Shown: piece after piece, positions 13,302 through 22,482 of the stretch
Numbering within the stretch: position 1 is the first letter of the stretch
How the letters are laid out: every line of letters begins with the position of its first letter
Origin: Kudoa neothunni
Lineage: Eukaryota > Animalia > Cnidaria
Length of the DNA: 64,000 nt
Direction of reading: 5' to 3'
NCBI GenBank assembly: GCA_964304625.1
Contig: OZ199840.1
Coordinates: 2,024,532 to 2,088,531 of the forward strand
Made by a program: the position numbers and the translations under genes
The notes under the pieces: model-generated
What the model saw: the letters and a program-made list of their open reading frames with translations, nothing else
What the model was told of the DNA's origin: nothing
Database searches by the model: none

Positions 13302-14471
13302 TAGGGGTTAAGACGGCTCGGTTTCGGTTCATCATTTCAGTTTCGAACATTTCAAAAACGGTTTTTGGTTTTGTAACTAGTTTTCAAAATTATCAATGTC
13401 AATTTTGTTTCATCCAAAAAATATGTAAAAATGTGATTGGTTGAAACCTTATTTTAATCGTTCTTGGTTTAAATATGCTCTAAAAAACAAGATTTTGAAT
13501 TATTTTACAATTGAATTAAATTCGATACCATATTTAATTGTTTTAATTAATTTTATTGTTTAAAATTATTTTTTACTGTATTTAAAAACGATTATAAATC
13601 TTTTACGATAAAATGATTTCAAACACATAATAATTGATTCCATGTTTCAATTTCCAATTGAATTATTTCTATTTTTATAAATAAACACAATGGTTTCAAG
13701 TTTCTAGTCGTTCAATTTTGTTCTCAACGGGGAAATAGCACGGTTGTATAAGGTAAAACATGTCTGAGTCAGCACTCGTAGTGTAGGTCTAACATTCATT
13801 AGAAGGAGTTTTACGAACCCTTTCTAAACGATCTGATGCCACACCGCGATTAATAAAATTTATAATTTCGCTAAATGCGAACAATATTTTGTTCTGTTTG
13901 GTCTGGGCACGTAATTTATCAAATTGTCTAAATTTATCTCATATTCGGAAGGTTCATAGTTATGGATTTGATCATTCAGTTCTATGAAATTAACTGCGTC
14001 TTCTAGCTCCAAATTTACAGTCTTTTCTAGAAAATATTTTTTATACAAATGTTTGAATCGAATTTTAAAAACATAAATATATCGGACCAAATGGTGCATA
14101 GTTCAAAACAGCATTTAGTAAATTTAATTTTTAAAATATCTGCATTGGTTCCGTCAATATACGAGAAATCCTCAATTGTAGTGGTGGGTATGAAGTCTTA
14201 TTTATTACATTTTGCTCTTTATTAGAAAGACTAACAAAACAGCTCCAAATACCAGATACAATTCCTGTAATACTAAATACAAAATTTGTTCCCTGTTAAA
14301 ACACGTCATTCAAAAATATTGTTGTCCTTTTACTATTTTAAAGACGCGTTTACTTATTTAAGACTTTATGAATTAATAATAAAAGCTAATATATATTAAT
14401 TAAGAAATAAATGTTCAAAATCGGATTTGGATTTTCGGTTTTGTCAAAAGCCGAACCCGTCTTAACTCCTA
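13302..14471 (-). mobile_element. hAT transposon deletion derivative
   Basis: TIRs TAGGGGTTAAGACGG / CCGTCTTAACTCCTA and perfect 8-bp TSD GAATTAAC (13294-13301, 14472-14479). Minus-strand remnants of the CxxH region (YCSHLAKL) and the hAT dimerisation domain (TTSADSDMF...ISPLRTKLND*KLETIVFIYKN). Confidence 0.9.
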
Positions 14472-14966
14472 GAATTAACCATGTTCTACTATGATCAAAT
14501 ATTTCCAGTCCCGTTCAAAGTTAATCAATTCGCGTTAATAATTAATGAATTTGTTTATCCATTCGTACACAGAGGTGCGCACAAATCATATACATATGTT
14601 GATAATTACTTTGAAGTTATTTAAAAAAATAGCACAATTCTGACGATAATCAAGCTCCTTCTAGTATAATAATTTGGACAACTATTTAAATCAAGGATTT
14701 TTGAATTATTGTTGAGATATCTGTTTAATCAGAATAAATATGGATATAGCAAATCCTTGTTGGTATACTTATTGTTTATTTCGTAGTTAAATATAGTTAA
14801 CGAATCAGTAGTTGTATAAGAACACAACAAACATTAAAAAATGCATATTTTTGAGCGATAAATTCAATAAAGTTATGATTATAAGTATTCTTGTTGTAAT
14901 CTCTTGGCCAAGTTAACTTAGAGTAAATATGTGAGACTATTGCATGGATTTTGTGAACAAGGTATT

Positions 14967-17900
14967 ATGAATAACAATTCTACGAGTGTAAACCTATTAA
15001 TATTAGTCGTGAGAATAACGAAAATTCGTAGACGTTTACAGCATTAAATATTGGGTGATATTGCTCATGGGAATTTTCTCTCATTTGTTTCTCATAATCC
15101 ATGCTATCGGCTGGAAAGAGATATTCTGTGATAATGGGCACATAGTAACGACACTGAAGAATCAAACTAAATTTTAATATCATGTTTAGTATGGAATCGT
15201 TTTGGAATTTAGTGCTACTACAATAACAGGATCATATTACTCATTAAAACAAACCAGCCCTGATCCATCAGTTCAACCTTTCATATTTATATACGAAGAG
15301 ACTATATTTCGTGGTTATTTTATATAATATTCATAATAAATAATAATTGTGATTAAAATAAAAATCTATTATATGTATATATTGAGTCTTAATAGTACTT
15401 TTTCATTATCTCGACAATTTAGTTTATTTTTATTCATGCCTCGATTCAAAATTGCATTATTTTCTTATTATTAATTCTCAACAATTTTATATTATTACGA
15501 TGCGCATAGGTGATAACTGTCTTGAATTTCTAAACGAAATAATACAAAAGTCAATATTTTCAGGTGTAACTAAAAGTCAGATATTTCTTAAAATATTATA
15601 TAAAGAAGTATTTTGCAAACGGTAACTCAATAATTGTTATTTAATTTTGTTATTATTCGAAATAAATTTTTTAGTTACTCTAAGGAACGATTTGATGAAA
15701 TAAAAGCTACTTGGAAGGAATTGGCCAATGATTATTTGAATCTTCAAGGTGTGGAAACAATTGACGTATTAATCAAAAAAAAAAATGACCTACTAATTTT
15801 TGGTCTTTGTAACACTATTATTGAAAAAAAAGTACATTTGTTAGTTTGCTTGTTTAATTGTATTAAGGAGATCAAACAATCATTGACGCTGATATTCGAA
15901 AGAAACATTCTATTTATCGGATTCCCAGTTCAAAATCCGAATGACTACCATGAGTCACTCATACACAGAGTTACATATAACAACAACCAACATTATATCT
16001 TGGCTAACACTTTTAGATGCGCTTCTACATATCATATCAGAATATTAATCTACAACCAACTTATCCAAGTATGATTCTTTGATAAATAGTAACGTAAAGG
16101 ATATTGTTTTAATAATAAATAAAAACGTAGGACACAAAAAGCGATGGTCCCATCGCCCATCCGTGTATGCCAGCAGGCGTAGAAACGATCTATGATCCTA
16201 CTAAAAAAACGACCATATGTGCTATAAATATCGTTAAAACTACTTCGACGAAGTTTGTAGGAGATTTTAATGAAGAAAAATGTAGAACATTTATCTCAAA
16301 TGCAATAAAACAAGATGGGCTCGATGCGGATACTTTTAAAAAAGGAAATTTCGCTGATCTGAATTTACCAATGCTGGTAGATCCTATTATGGATATGTTG
16401 GTAAATTCGACGCCAACATAGCATTTGAATTTTACAACTTTATTTATATTAAAGATTTTCACTTCAGTAATTAGAGAATTCGAATTTATTTATGTAATCC
16501 TGAGGGAATTTTCGCATATGCGATGGCTAAAATGCGATTATTTCCCAACAAGATCCAAAGTAAATTCTATAATTTCTTCACGTTCGTAATTTTCTCCATC
16601 GAATATAGTCTTCAATCGATACGTGTCTTGAAACAATGTACATAGAATACGTGTTAGTACATATTTTGGGATATCCGAACCGTGGAAAGATTCATATGAG
16701 CGCGTATATGGAGTTTATAATTAGATTAGAGTTTGAAATTAAAAAATAGTGAGAAACCACATTCAAACAAGAAAAAAAATATATTTGCTGATCCAAGGAT
16801 GGGATTTTTCGATGAGCTCATTCTACCTTCGACTTTGTAATTTAGAAAATTTCATAATTATTGCAGTATTCTAACTACTGCACAATAGGTTAGTACCTAC
16901 TTCAACTACCTCAATGACAACTGAACCATCTACCATTGTAGAAACAACAACACTTGAACCATCTACCATTGTAGAAACAACAACACTTGAACCATCTACC
17001 ATTGTAGAAACAACACTTGAACCATCTACCATTGTAGAAACAACAACACTTGAACCATCTACCATTGTAGTAACAATAACACTTGAACCATCTACCATTG
17101 TAGAAACAACAACACTTGAACCATCTACCATTGTAGAAACAACAACATTTGAACCATCTACCATTGTAGAAACAACAACACTTGAACCATCTACCATTGT
17201 AGTAACAATAACACTTGAACCATCTACCATTGTAGAAACAACAACATTTGAACCATCTACCATTGTAGAAACAACAACACTTGAACCATCTACCATTATA
17301 GTAACAATAACACTTGAACCATCTACCATTGTAGTAACAACAACACTTGAACCATCTACCATTGTAGAAACAACAACACTTGAACCATCTACCATTGTAG
17401 TAACAATAACACTTGAACCATCTACCATTGTAGTAACAACAACACTTGAACCATCTACCATTGTAGTAACAACAACACTTGAACCATCTACCATTGTAGA
17501 AACAACACTTGAACCATCTACCATTGTAGAAACAACAACACTTGAACCATCTACCATTGTAGTAACAATAACACTTGAACCATCTACCATTGTAGAAACA
17601 ACAACACTTGAACCATCTACCATTGTAGAAACAACAACATTTGAACCATCTACCATTGTAGAAACAACAACACTTGAACCATCTACCATTGTAGTAACAA
17701 TAACACTTGAACCATCTACCATTGTAGAAACAACAACATTTGAACCATCTACCATTGTAGAAACAACAACACTTGAACCATCTACCATTGTAGAAACAAC
17801 AACACTTGAACCATCTACCATTGTAGAAACAACACTTGAACCATCTACCATTGTAGAAACAACAACACTTGAACCATCTACCATTGTAGTAACAATAACA

Positions 17901-19217
17901 CTTGAACCATCTACCATTGTAGAAACAACAACACTTGAACCATCTACCATTGTAGAAACAACAACATTTGAACCATCTACCATTGTAGAAACAACAACAC
18001 TTGAACCATCTACCATTGTAGTAACAATAACACTTGAACCATCTACCATTGTAGAAACAACAACATTTGAACCATCTACCATTGTAGAAACAACAACACT
18101 TGAACCATCTACCATTATAGTAACAATAACACTTGAACCATCTACCATTGTAGTAACAACAACACTTGAACCATCTACCATTGTAGAAACAACAACACTT
18201 GAACCATCTACCATTGTAGTAACAATAACACTTGAACCATCTACCATTGTAGTAACAACAACACTTGAACCATCTACCATTGTAGTAACAACAACACTTG
18301 AACCATCTACCATTGTAGAAACAACACTTGAACCATCTACCATTGTAGAAACAACAACACTTGAACCATCTACCATTGTAGTAACAATAACACTTGAACC
18401 ATCTACCATTGTAGAAACAACAACACTTGAACCATCTACCATTGTAGAAACAACAACATTTGAACCATCTACCATTGTAGAAACAACAACACTTGAACCA
18501 TCTACCATTGTAGTAACAATAACACTTGAACCATCTACCATTGTAGAAACAACAACATTTGAACCATCTACCATTGTAGAAACAACAACACTTGAACCAT
18601 CTACCATTATAGTAACAATAACACTTGAACCATCTACCATTGTAGAAACAACAACATTTGAACCATCTACCATTGTAGAAACAACAACACTTGAACCATC
18701 TACCATTGTAGTAACAATAACACTTGAACCATCTACCATTGTAGTAACAATAACACTTGAACCATCTACCATTGTAGTAACAACAACACTTGAACCATCT
18801 ACCATTGTAGAAACAACAACATTTGAACCATCTACCATTGTAGAAACAACAACACTTGAACCATCTACCATTGTAGTAACAATAACACTTGAACCATCTA
18901 CCATTGTAGTAACAACAACACTTGAACCATCTACCATTGTAGAAACAACAACATTTGAACCATCTACCATTGTAGAAACAACAACACTTGAACCATCTAC
19001 CATTGTAGTAACAATAACACTTGAACCATCTACCATTGTAGAAACAACAACGATTGTAGAAACAACAACAATTGAAATAACTTCGACATCAAAAGTCATC
19101 TCCGAGGGAACCGAAATATGGATTGGTATAGGAGTAGAAGTTGGGATTATTGTTATATTTGGTGCTATTATTTTTTATTGCTTAAAACCAAAAAGAACCA
19201 CCGAACAGAACCTATAA
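14967..19217 (-). other. Note: antisense 742-aa ORF (16871-19099) is a by-product of the stop-free repeat; see the + strand gene at the same coordinates
   Basis: The 33-bp unit has no stop in that antisense frame, and the ORF has almost no sequence outside the array. Confidence 0.3.
14967..19217 (+). CDS. Divergent GDA1/CD39 (E-NTPDase/apyrase)-fold protein with Thr/Ser/Pro mucin stalk and C-terminal TM; multi-exon; start at 14967 or 15067
   Basis: Spliced exons align colinearly with CD39: YGIVLEFSATT (YGIVLDAGSSH), LQGVETI...CNTII (FQGARII...INYLL), FPVQN...YNNNQHYILANTFRC...LIQ (FVPQN...YGKDYNVYTHSFLC...DIQ), HPCMPAG (DPCFHPG), EEKCRTFI, TCLETMYIEYVLVHILG, DPRMGFF (GWTLGYM). A phase-2 intron joins to the mucin exon at 16889. 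TM IWIGIGVEVGIIVIFGAIIFYCL, tail KPKRTTEQNL. Confidence 0.8.
16920..19070 (+). repeat. Coding minisatellite, 33-bp unit (LEPSTIVETTT), ~65 copies, with an 819-bp higher-order repeat
   Basis: Unit CTTGAACCATCTACCATTGTAGAAACAACAACA. 30-bp variant units start at 16986, 17478, 17805 and 18297. Confidence 0.99.
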
Positions 19218-19799
19218 ACATTTTCAATATTTCATGGTTATTCTTGGTTGAACATTTCGTTTTTCCCCCATAACATTACAAATTTTTAAACTAATGCAAA
19301 ATGCCGGCCAGATTCGTTTGAAATGGGAATATTTGGCGTCGCAGATTTTATTGAAACCATTATACGAAAATTATAATAATACTAATTAACCCATAGAAAA
19401 AATCAAAATAACTTTTATCCAAGTACAGTCGATAGTCGATGACGGGTAGATCGTAACTTTCGAAAATAGGTAAAAATTATAAATTATAAAGAAAATTAAT
19501 TATTAAAGTTTAACTCAAAATACACTTTAGAGTAAACACAATATGTGGAAAAAATATTAGCTGTCTAATGATTAAATGTTGGTAAGTTTCCCTTATTTTT
19601 AGGCATTGTCTATTCTTACGGTAACGAATATCTCCTAGAATGATTAATATATTGCAAAACTGATTACATCCCCTTTTAAAGTGATTTTTTATTTCCTCAA
19701 AGATAAATTTTTATCAAGTTAACTTTTCACTAAAAATTAGTGATGGATTTGAGCACTCAATGATAGTATATGTTTTTAATTCACTTAAATATAAACTTA

Positions 19800-22482
19800 T
19801 TTGTAACGATTAAGCATGTATGAGTTTGTATTTTTGTGTGAAGACTTAATTAGTGTAAAATCGATACCTCTTGTACATCCAAGGTGCACACGATGCTTCA
19901 TTTTTATAATCACTGTGGCGGTTTGATTAACCGATAGGATTTGTAATTTGAATTCGAAATTTATTAGATATATAGTACAATTAATTTTAATAACGTGCAT
20001 AAATGACTATCTTATCTTAGAATGCGTAACGTCTAATACGCAATAAATAAATAACATTTCCAAAATGTTCAATAGTTACTCTGGTGGAGTAATTAATATG
20101 TCATCAAGTTAGGCTATTTTTAGAGAAATTTCTCAAAGCTCTATTTTTTTAGCTTTTTTAGGAGCCCAATGGCTGTCGTTCTATTTCCTTTGGGTCTTCC
20201 TATAGATTTGACTTTTGATGGAAGATTAAGTCTAAAAATACAAATCGTAATACTCGAGCAAAAATTTCTTCGACAGTGTACTTATCGAGTTTTCTGCTGT
20301 TGGCACAAGGGCATAAATTTGACTGGACTTAGATTTTTGCGTTTCGGATGTCAAAGGTCGATCTAAGTTAGTGTTATTGCAGATCTTAAAACAGTTAAAA
20401 ATATAATGTTTAATGTTATTTCTCCCTCACAACTATCATTATTAATTACAAAATTTTTAAATTATATTAATTGTAGAAGCATCCTCATCTTCAGAGTAAC
20501 TGTACGTATCATTACCCAAATTATTATTATTAGACCCACCTTTCATTAAAGTATACTTCAAAATTTTTACAGCAATAAAACTAAGAGACTTATATTGGTA
20601 GTTTCAATGAGTTTTTCTTTGTCATGATTTTTTATGACAACCTCGAGACTTTTGATAGTCTCTAGTCAGAGACTGTAAAAACCCCCACAGTATTTTGCTG
20701 AAGTTGACGCCAACTTTTTTGAATAGGTGCATGTTTACTTTAGATTTTTTGAAAAAGTTTCAATAGAATCTTTTTTCTTAATTTTATGATTTCTCCAACA
20801 GGGTTGAAATTATCGCAATCGGTGTTAATGAATTTTATGAAATTATATGTATGATGTCGTGACCATCTGGAATCACATAGTGTTCCACTAAACATATCTA
20901 CCATATTAAGTGCCCTTTGTTGGAGAATATGCTCGCAAGACAATTTATAAGATCGTTGATGCAAACTATTACAACTCTCGATATCTGCTCCATCTTTTTC
21001 AGGGGTAATCGTTATTTTACTTAATTGCTCTGATGCTATGTGGAATGCATAAGGCTTTAATTCATTGAAATATTTCTTATGGGATTCACTAGTGATTCTA
21101 GAGTCGGAAAATTTTTGTAATCCTGAAACAATTCTATTCTTTCTTTCGATCCTATTGGATGTTAAGTAATTGAAGAAATTAGTGAAGAAATCTTCCAGGG
21201 TCGAAAATTGGTATATGACACTTTTTAATTTCGCATTAATAGCCTCTAATCTATTTTTCGCTGAATTATTATGGAAGCTTTCAGTCTTACTTAACCCAAT
21301 ACACCATTATTTACAAATTGGTTTCCAATTTTTATTGAAATATCGGCTAAGCTTTTCGATTCCATATCCATATAATCCATTGGAGAACTTACAAAAATTC
21401 TTTTCAGAATCGCTATATATCATTTTAATAAGAGTAGACAGAATATAATTCTTTTCTTCAGAAATAATTCCGTATTTCCCAACTAAAAATTCTCTTCGAA
21501 AAGCTTGGAGAACATGAAACTTGCAAATTATTGAAGAAGCAGGTGGAAAAATCTCCCTAAGGCATCTTCACAGGTTATGATCTTCGTCTGTGACAATTGA
21601 TGAGATTCTTGATGTTAACCAAAGCGCAACATCGATTATCTCATTTAATAACCATTTTATTGCTGGCTCTGTCTCTTTATAAAGAATGCAACCACTTGTT
21701 ATATGTGTTTGACCAAATGAATCTTTCGCTGCAGTTAAGTAAAAGGATGCTCTAAAAATATATATTTTAACTAAGAAGAGAATTAATGTTACCTTGAATC
21801 AAGTAGTTTGTAGGTTGCATCCATGAACATTATTTCTGGATAATATTCAAACACCCTTCTCATTTGTTCGTCCACGAAAAAAATTCCAGTTACCATATTT
21901 TGGGAAGATAGAATTCTTACTCTGCAATTATAGTTTTTTTGTAGCAAATTTACAACCGAATCGGCATCGTGTAGCTTGCTCGACATAAGTTCCTTAACAT
22001 TGTGAAGAGGTTTCCAAGACACATTTTTTCCAGTTTCTTGATTTATTTTGGATTGCATTAATTTTTTGTTTGCACCCAGTGATATCAATTCGGCAATATA
22101 TGTGTCCGAAAGGTCTATCTTCCGTTGGTTTGGTAAATTCGAATAGAGGGCAGTGTCAACTGTACGATTATGAACCAAATTCATTGATCTTACTTCCAAG
22201 TAATTTCCATCTCCACTTGCTTCTAATGTAATGCTGAGTGGACAATTGGTTTTCATCGATGATTTATTCCTTTCTTCTTTGCCAACACATTTGTAGCTCA
22301 CACCAAAAAAACAAACATAACGAATTTCATAATATATTAGTTGAGCGTTAAAAATTTTTCTTGAATCGCGTATTTTTAGATTGCAGAAATTTGCTTGTTC
22401 GTATGCTCTTATTTTGGTTTGTAAACTTACAAACGAATGAAAACTCATACCAATTAAAAAAAGGAGCGCCTTTTGTTTCCAT
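19800..22482 (-). pseudogene. MULE/SWIM (ZSWIM3-like) transposase, frameshifted and stop-interrupted
   Basis: CPLSITL...LVHN (FAR1/WRKY-like), IMFMDATYKL (first catalytic D), TDED...ICKFHVLQAF (CxxH), SCNS...LSCEHIL (SWIM remnant), GRPKGNRTTAIGL. Confidence 0.85.

Follow-up and report, generated by a model that had tools for sequence, protein, structure and literature searches.

Ecto-NTPDases of the GDA1/CD39 family (PF01150) are represented by the structures of rat NTPDase1 (3zx3), rat NTPDase2 (3cj1) and Legionella NTPDase1 (4br9), and are anchored in the membrane either by two transmembrane segments (TMs) or by an N-terminal anchor. This fold family is already known, and so are degenerate NTPDases of myxobolid parasites, which have been deposited under enzyme names. 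In tuna and other fish, species of the myxozoan genus Kudoa are responsible for post-harvest liquefaction of the muscle; to our knowledge, little has been reported about the molecules that myxozoans show to their hosts. Here, a window of 64,000 nucleotides from the genome of Kudoa neothunni (contig C3, 2024532-2088531) was analyzed, and its numbering is used throughout. On the forward strand, at 15067-19217, it contains what is probably an intact gene of 10 exons encoding a type I membrane protein, in which a very probably NTPDase-derived and presumably non-catalytic head is carried by a mucin-like stalk. A first-pass annotation had proposed that an NTPDase-fold head, devoid of its catalytic motifs, is borne by a mucin-like stalk that leads to a TM, and this architecture is supported by several independent lines of evidence.

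Gene structure

When read frame by frame, 15067-19217 (+) forms a single intact gene with 10 exons and nine introns of 45, 196, 53, 36, 62, 54, 49, 46 and 52 nt (in this order), each of which begins with GT and ends with AG, and the phase is kept at each exon junction. The first-pass annotation had called the gene spliced in frame, and GT-AG introns of 36 to 196 nt with matching phases indeed join every head exon. Both the boundaries and the order of the exons are reproduced in paralogues found elsewhere in the genome. The first exon (E1, 15067-15144, +) opens with an ATG, encodes a hydrophobic, signal-like peptide of 26 amino acids (aa) and is followed by a GTAACG donor; it differs from a duplicate of the locus on contig C2 at 2 of 78 nt and 1 of 26 aa. 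The start had been placed at the ATG at 14967. As judged from the sequence, the ATG at 15067 is more likely, because the AG before the second exon is conserved in seven paralogues, all of which begin this exon with YG[IVMA][IV][LIM], and because one paralogue (L048) has a similar signal-like first exon (MGF..LCD..I followed by GTAA) upstream of its own E2.

E2 (15190-15313, +) encodes a beta-hairpin, YGIVLEFSATT..., which is equivalent to apyrase conserved region 1 (ACR1) and in which the phosphate loop is replaced. The ACR2-equivalent segment, ..IFLKILYKEVF.., lies in E3 (15510-15621, +), which has colinear matches in seven paralogues with the motif IFLKVFY. E4a (15675-15831, +) carries the ACR3-equivalent segment ..KKKNDLLIFGLCN.., for which the paralogue consensus reads D[IL]LTFG..N, and is separated from E4b by the 36-nt intron (15832-15867, +), which starts with GT and ends with AG. 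In the window gene this intron is in frame and open; the 12 equivalent codons contain stops in six paralogues (L006, L007, L008, L010, L011 and L012). E4b (15868-16068, +) comprises the ACR4-equivalent hairpin ..TLIFERNILFIGF.. and an FxC[AS]S helix, and an iterated search returned 15 paralogue matches with E values of 1e-21 to 1e-29. The HPC..C..FVG.F.E.C module of E5 (16131-16400, +) is the segment with demonstrable NTPDase homology. Between E5 and E8, the exons are read in other frames than an initial inspection would indicate. E6 (16455-16559, +) lies between GT-AG introns that measure 54 and 49 nt, with phases 0/0; only its splice phase and its counterpart in the near-identical C2 duplicate served to assign it, and no match was found in any other paralogue. 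E7 (16609-16703, +) encodes a C..YLRYVL..LG[FY] helix, which matches seven paralogues, and E8 (16750-16836, +) encodes the ACR5-equivalent ..IFADPRMGFF.., whose motif [FY]xDPR[IVF]G is kept in six to seven paralogues. Head and stalk are connected across an intron of 52 nt (16837-16888, +; GTAATT...AATAG), which the first-pass annotation had already recognized as the junction: it joins E8 to the stalk exon, and its phase-2 junction restores the stalk frame. The last exon (E9, 16889-19217, +) is an open frame of 775 aa that encodes the Thr-rich stalk, the TM and the tail and ends with a TAA stop codon at 19215-19217.

Two local features were noticed within these exons. A homopolymer of 11 A residues at 15774-15784 (codons KKK) lies inside E4a; it is prone to slippage and could change the frame. 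Furthermore, in a single DNA contig from run X1 (depth 4.6), position 16609 is directly followed by 16684, so that 74 nt, the greater part of E7, are missing; this could reflect a haplotype deletion, a misassembly derived from a paralogue or an artefact.

Ancestry of the head

The head of about 406 aa very probably descends from a GDA1/CD39 NTPDase. Pfam, profile and fold tests of the head were run exon by exon, and E5 provides the most direct evidence. PF01150 matches E5 of two more distant paralogues, L016 (9.3e-5, 21.7 bits) and L033 (6.4e-4, 18.9 bits), at profile positions 232-301, and is the sole Pfam family that matches more than one member of the gene family. When an E5 profile was compared with 1.84 billion representative proteins, the sole full-length protein found was KII62879.1 (P0005), annotated as 'ENTPD8' of the myxozoan Thelohanellus kitauei, with an E value of 2.4e-6 at residues 262-324; the other returns were a 91-aa metagenomic sequence described below (P0001) and BspA-LRR noise. 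P0005 itself scores 45 bits on PF01150, and hhalign aligns E5 to it with a probability of 95% and an E value of 5e-8. The best sequence match of the E5 profile in the PDB is rat NTPDase1, in which the equivalent residues are hit and the cysteines are aligned.

Structural comparison points in the same direction. The first-pass annotation had looked to AlphaFold and Foldseek to identify the fold, and both E5 and E4b, modeled as fragments, place NTPDases first. With the AlphaFold2 fragment of E5 (pLDDT 70), NTPDase1 and NTPDase2 fill Foldseek ranks 1 to 7, and two of three VIA matches are NTPDases. The AlphaFold2 fragment of E4b (pLDDT 75) forms the hairpin, two further strands and a helix, and its top Foldseek matches are Legionella, rat and plant NTPDases (probability 0.9-0.97, identity 10-13%). 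In addition, the best hhalign placements in P0005 are colinear and lie at the expected sites, with E2 at residues 40-56 (ACR1), E4b at 195-256 (ACR4), E5 at 259-327 and E7 at 372-402; individually, the placement is significant for E5 alone, and E3, E4a and E8 have no meaningful placement. The templates used for hhalign are shallow and include myxozoan relatives only, because searches for canonical NTPDases returned only myxozoan proteins.

Gene structure and cysteines provide further links. In both the window gene and a canonical NTPDase gene of the same genome (L001), E2 or its equivalent ends in a Gly codon that is interrupted by a phase-1 intron, 42-44 aa past the YG of ACR1. The head contains 10 cysteines, some of which are found at the FxC, HPC, mid-E5, E.C, E6 and E7 positions. 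We take the FxC, HPC, C and C positions to be four of the 10 ectodomain disulfide cysteines of rat NTPDase2, and the six cysteines from E4b to E7 presumably coincide with disulfide cysteines of that protein. The 406 head residues contain no N-x-S/T sequon despite many Asn codons.

Loss of the apyrase conserved regions

The first-pass annotation had claimed that all five ACRs are replaced, and the strings it quoted are all present: EFSAT in E2, ILYKEV in E3, KKND in E4a, IFERNI in E4b and PRMG in E8. For ACR1 and ACR4, the replacement is established by alignment. YGIIDAGSTGS of the canonical L001 and YGVVVDISS of P0005 align to YGIVLEFSATT of the window gene, and IFERNI stands in the place of canonical ELGGAS (LDMKNY in P0005). 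ILYKEV (ACR2), KKND (ACR3) and PRMG (ACR5) were assigned by position and by the family motifs IFLKVFY, D[IL]LTFG and DPR[IV]G. The loss of the phosphate-binding loops of ACR1 (DAGSS to EFSAT) and ACR4 (DLGGAS to IFERNI) is strongly supported by the sequence, and because both loops appear to be gone, hydrolysis of nucleotides by the head is considered very unlikely. A canonical ACR motif was found in none of 31 paralogue loci; L001 and a second canonical gene, L003, do carry such motifs.

Stalk, transmembrane segment and tail

The repeat, TM and short tail named in the first-pass annotation are all borne out by the open reading frame (ORF) 16914-19217 (+). TRF detects a tandem repeat at 16922-19051 (+) with a 33-bp unit in 64.9 copies (94% matches, score 3784), which corresponds to 64-65 copies of an 11-aa unit such as LEPSTIVETTT, LEPSTIVVTIT or FEPSTIVETTT. 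The resulting stalk of 727 aa is built from few variants of LEPSTIVETTT, and with 43.2% Ser and Thr and 9.1% Pro it has the composition of a mucin-like (PTS) domain (tandem repeats, Ser and Thr ≥40%, Pro ≥5%). It is followed by a hydrophobic TM of 23 aa (19116-19184, +), which was assigned by inspection of the sequence and is homologous to the paralogue TM GIGIGV..G.I..FG...F.CLK.KR, and by a basic cytoplasmic tail of 10 aa, KPKRTTEQNL (19185-19214, +). By the same inspection, the signal-like N-terminus, single C-terminal TM and short tail correspond to a type I layout. The antisense ORF of 742 aa at 16871-19099 (-), which encodes MVDGSSVVVST repeats, was rejected as a by-product of the repeat, as it lacks splice partners, a TM and support from paralogues.

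Glycosyltransferases of the Glyco_transf_7C type were found at 10 loci of the genome, seven of which score 64-74 bits. They include C1:110799, C1:67927, C2:611619, C2:614549, C2:967249, C3:606466 and C2:6124117, and the one read closely (L057) is beta-1,4-galactosyltransferase-like. This copy number is high for so reduced a genome, and several of the loci lie near chromosome ends.

A family of about 40 genes

The first-pass annotation had asked for paralogues, and their search showed that the window gene is no singleton but one of about 40 family members. E4 and E5 gave 20-23 genome matches, and a profile of E5 (alignment A1) gave 43 matches at about 41 loci; examples are C3:4864, C2:16463, C2:11904138, C1:16996266, C3:10.84-10.87 Mb and C3:10.34-10.37 Mb. 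In all seven close paralogues examined, the head with its ACR5-like exon is separated by a short intron from a Ser/Thr-rich stretch, which measures between about 20 and about 200 aa; a GKKAG-type juxtamembrane motif, a TM similar in sequence type to that of the window gene and a basic tail then complete the protein. As far as sequence can tell, this shared layout is the best stand-in for RNA evidence that head and stalk form one unit, and it presents the window gene as the extreme member of a family-wide trait rather than a one-off. The ACR1-type YG..hairpin is kept in all paralogues, and L048 retains MDNGDG. The family falls into two subgroups: the more distant paralogues retain the CxxxxxC pair of NTPDases, and the other subgroup, to which the window gene belongs, no longer has it.

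Of the approximately 41 loci, 12 are found no more than 0.5 Mb away from a chromosome end, versus 7.5% expected, a count that is inflated by tandem clusters. The assembly of 40.26 Mb consists of four contigs (17.154, 12.040 and 11.048 Mb, and 18,219 bp), and the genome paper, which is based on yellowfin tuna data, reports 40.2 Mb with an N50 of 12.0 Mb in three chromosomes, a mitochondrial contig of 18,219 bp, 30.4% GC, a median intron of 49 bp and 5,316 gene models (PMC12239612). About 0.75% of these predicted genes belong to the family. Outside K. neothunni, an E5-type exon is encoded by P0001 (91 aa), which comes from a metagenome contig of 901 bp with 30% GC (L035; ENA ERZ28624939, scaffold_21136). 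The identity of P0001 to the K. neothunni copies does not exceed 45%, so that at least one other, related organism carries the family.

Apart from the gene family, the mitochondrial contig has a very divergent COX1, uses TGA for Trp and contains no credible tRNA genes. A nematode source, to which the small introns and the three chromosomes might have pointed, was rejected, since the mitochondrial genome is of the myxozoan type and, in a weak test, cuticle collagen gave no match. About 2.6 kb downstream of the window gene, an ORF at 21789-22448 (-) encodes a ZSWIM3 N-terminal and an RNaseH-like domain and is probably a MULE or a transposase-derived gene.

Divergence from the C2 duplicate

The C2 duplicate (L036, C2:7342000-7351999, at about C2:7.349 Mb) is a recent segmental copy, which matches at least window positions 14031-19801 and contains about 41 repeat units. 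The introns differ at 11 of 592 sites (1.9%), and the flanks differ by 1.7% upstream and 5% downstream. In the head, 77.5 of 853 non-synonymous sites (9.1%) and 11.5 of 218 synonymous sites (5.3%) differ, which corresponds to a dN/dS of 1.8, and the head exons are about five times more diverged than the introns. The excess of non-synonymous over non-coding change is significant (Fisher p 2e-13). At the opposite end of the gene, no mismatch was found in 166 aligned nt of TM and tail (19052-19217; 14 gap columns). Hypermutation was rejected as the source of the exon divergence, as the substitution spectrum and the ratio of transitions to transversions are equal in exons and non-exons. The simplest reading of these sequence comparisons is selection for amino-acid change in the head, because neutral decay cannot drive exons to diverge faster than introns; in the time since this recent duplication, amino-acid sites have changed more than the introns, which points to diversifying selection.

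Possible function and alternative explanations

An evolutionary path that would lead to this architecture starts with an ancestral ecto-nucleotidase, which may have been duplicated and lost its catalytic motifs. A mucin stalk and type I topology would then have been gained, the family expanded and the head changed fast. The head would no longer hydrolyze nucleotides and could serve as a surface-exposed binding, decoy or shielding module, which an extended, O-glycosylated stalk would keep far from the membrane. It may act at the host interface, either at the tuna muscle fiber or in the invertebrate host, and diversifying selection on the head would be the pattern expected for a host-exposed ligand or antigen. 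In a more far-reaching form, which we put forward tentatively as a possibility, the approximately 40 pseudo-NTPDase/mucin genes would together form a major, rapidly diversifying coat at the host interface, encoded in part near chromosome ends. The dead nucleotide cleft would bind ligands or act as a decoy, the reach of the head would depend on the length of the stalk, and the coat would function in adhesion or in immune or cellular evasion in the fish host. Several observations weigh against an NTPDase-derived, non-catalytic head on a mucin-like stalk or against its proposed role, and they are considered here together with the explanations that compete with it.

The same architecture might belong to a structural glycoprotein of the spore, the valve cells or the plasmodial glycocalyx, which would act as spacer, lubricant or matrix and not as a host-directed ligand, decoy or antigen. 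The stalk makes up most of the protein, and its length varies among paralogues between about 20 and about 720 aa, both of which would fit such a role. A pure spacer, however, is not expected to give head exons with about five times the divergence of introns and a dN/dS above 1, and the conservation of a folded head over about 40 paralogues points to a role of the head in its own right, so that we consider a structural role unlikely. Nevertheless, the comparison of dN with dS alone is not significant (p 0.10). As to the glycosylation of the stalk, the PF02709 matches of the genome proved to be beta-4-GalT-like and not polypeptide GalNAc-transferases, and PF02709 was therefore dropped as a proxy for the latter enzymes.

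Doubt could also be raised as to whether the locus is a single expressed gene, since head and stalk might be separate genes or the copy might be silent or decaying. No RNA read from three runs with the species label (X5-X7) covers 14700-16960, a result that is no test of splicing, and parasite RNA reads are reported as very few in the K. neothunni genome paper (PMC12239612). Moreover, the C2 duplicate contains frameshifts in E3, E4a, E7 and the stalk and is probably a pseudogene, unless the frameshifts are assembly errors, and the X1 DNA contig lacks 74 nt inside E7. On the other hand, 10 exons remain in frame over nine GT-AG introns, the last exon is open for 775 aa in DNA of 30% GC, and the same succession of head, short intron, stalk and TM recurs in seven paralogues with homologous TMs. 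A split or silent locus is therefore held to be improbable.

For the head, an origin other than from an NTPDase would mean a lineage-specific fold that shares only the cysteine-rich E5 module with NTPDases. Significant sequence similarity is indeed limited to E5, and the other exon profiles have no significant match. The Pfam match to GDA1_CD39, which the first-pass annotation had anticipated, is found in E5 of the two paralogues at scores below the Pfam cut-off of 24.9 bits, and in no exon of the window gene at E ≤10; likewise, a six-frame scan of the K. neothunni genome with PF01150 detected canonical NTPDase genes only and missed the window locus. A wide VIA search with the E4b fragment was non-specific, profiles of E4a, E4b and E7 found nothing above noise in the PDB, and the E4 open frame had no usable match in the ESM Atlas. 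In addition, the evidence for a two-domain ASKHA fold comes from the E5 and E4b fragments only. Nevertheless, the E4b fragment independently puts NTPDases first in Foldseek, and E2, E4b and E7 are colinear at the expected sites of P0005. The YG..hairpin of ACR1 occurs in all paralogues, with MDNGDG in L048, an intron is shared with the canonical L001 in both position and phase, and the length of the head equals that of an NTPDase ectodomain. Together with the six cysteines from E4b to E7, which we take to match disulfide cysteines of rat NTPDase2, these features leave a non-NTPDase origin with little probability. That the head is still an active nucleotidase through non-canonical residues is highly improbable: by eye, an Asp occupies the presumed position of the ACR3 Glu in most close paralogues, so that residual chemistry is possible, but in the window gene other residues stand in for both DxG phosphate loops (ACR1, ACR4) as well as for the motifs of ACR2 and ACR5, no canonical ACR motif occurs over the family, and the enzymatic need is covered by the two canonical NTPDase genes.

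The papers that could be searched contain no description of type I topology, a mucin-like stalk, an expansion to about 40 genes or an excess of amino-acid change in this family, and the family is mentioned neither in the K. neothunni genome paper (PMC12239612) nor in the Sphaerospora preprint. An NTPDase-derived head on a mucin-like stalk would be a new architecture for the CD39/GDA1 superfamily and would add to the pseudoenzymes that have been recruited as surface modules. The genes represent a concrete, testable candidate family for the myxozoan surface and could become targets for localization, diagnostics and studies of the host-parasite interface. If they indeed form a coat at the host interface, no variant-type surface family built from an enzyme fold would have been defined in a myxosporean before them.

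Comparison with known systems

With the ecto-NTPDases, whose structures are the best matches of the E4b and E5 fragment models, the window head shares a colinear order of elements and the ACR1-type YG..hairpin. It differs from them in that all five ACRs are replaced (ACR2, ACR3 and ACR5 by position only), and where those enzymes have two TMs or are anchored at the N-terminus, the window gene encodes a signal-like peptide, a stalk of 727 aa and one C-terminal TM, an arrangement found in K. neothunni in a family of about 40 members. Within the same genome, the canonical NTPDase L001 (C2:7278745) has intact DAGSTG, ATAGMR, LEG, ELGGAS and QWTYG motifs, reaches 119 bits on PF01150 and lacks a stalk; it shares ancestry and the intron past ACR1 with the window gene. 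In the other canonical NTPDase, L003 (C1:885630), only ACR1, ACR4 and ACR5 were seen.

The closest relatives of E5 outside the family are the 'ENTPD8-like' proteins of myxobolids, which comprise KII62879.1 of T. kitauei, HZS_3131 of Henneguya salminicola (P0033) and MXB_1919 of Myxobolus squamalis (P0034). Like the window gene, these proteins have degenerate ACRs (DISS, GTELTR and LDMKNY), which are conserved between the species, and like its subgroup they are devoid of the CxxxxxC pair; furthermore, the RKAG juxtamembrane motif that precedes their C-terminal TM resembles GKKAG of the Kudoa family. In contrast to the Kudoa proteins, they are recognized by Pfam (45 bits), possess N- and C-terminal TMs in the manner of CD39 and lack a stalk. 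Among the search returns, each species is represented by one homologue, and sequence similarity to the Kudoa family does not extend beyond the E5 region.

A functional parallel may be drawn with the trans-sialidase and mucin-type families of Trypanosoma cruzi. These families are large, some of their members are enzymatically dead versions of an enzyme fold that serve as surface ligands, and Thr-rich or repeat regions are present. The T. cruzi trans-sialidases belong to a protist, are built on a sialidase beta-propeller and are anchored by GPI. Their fold is unrelated to that of the Kudoa head, so that the resemblance would be one of function, and no homology is implied.

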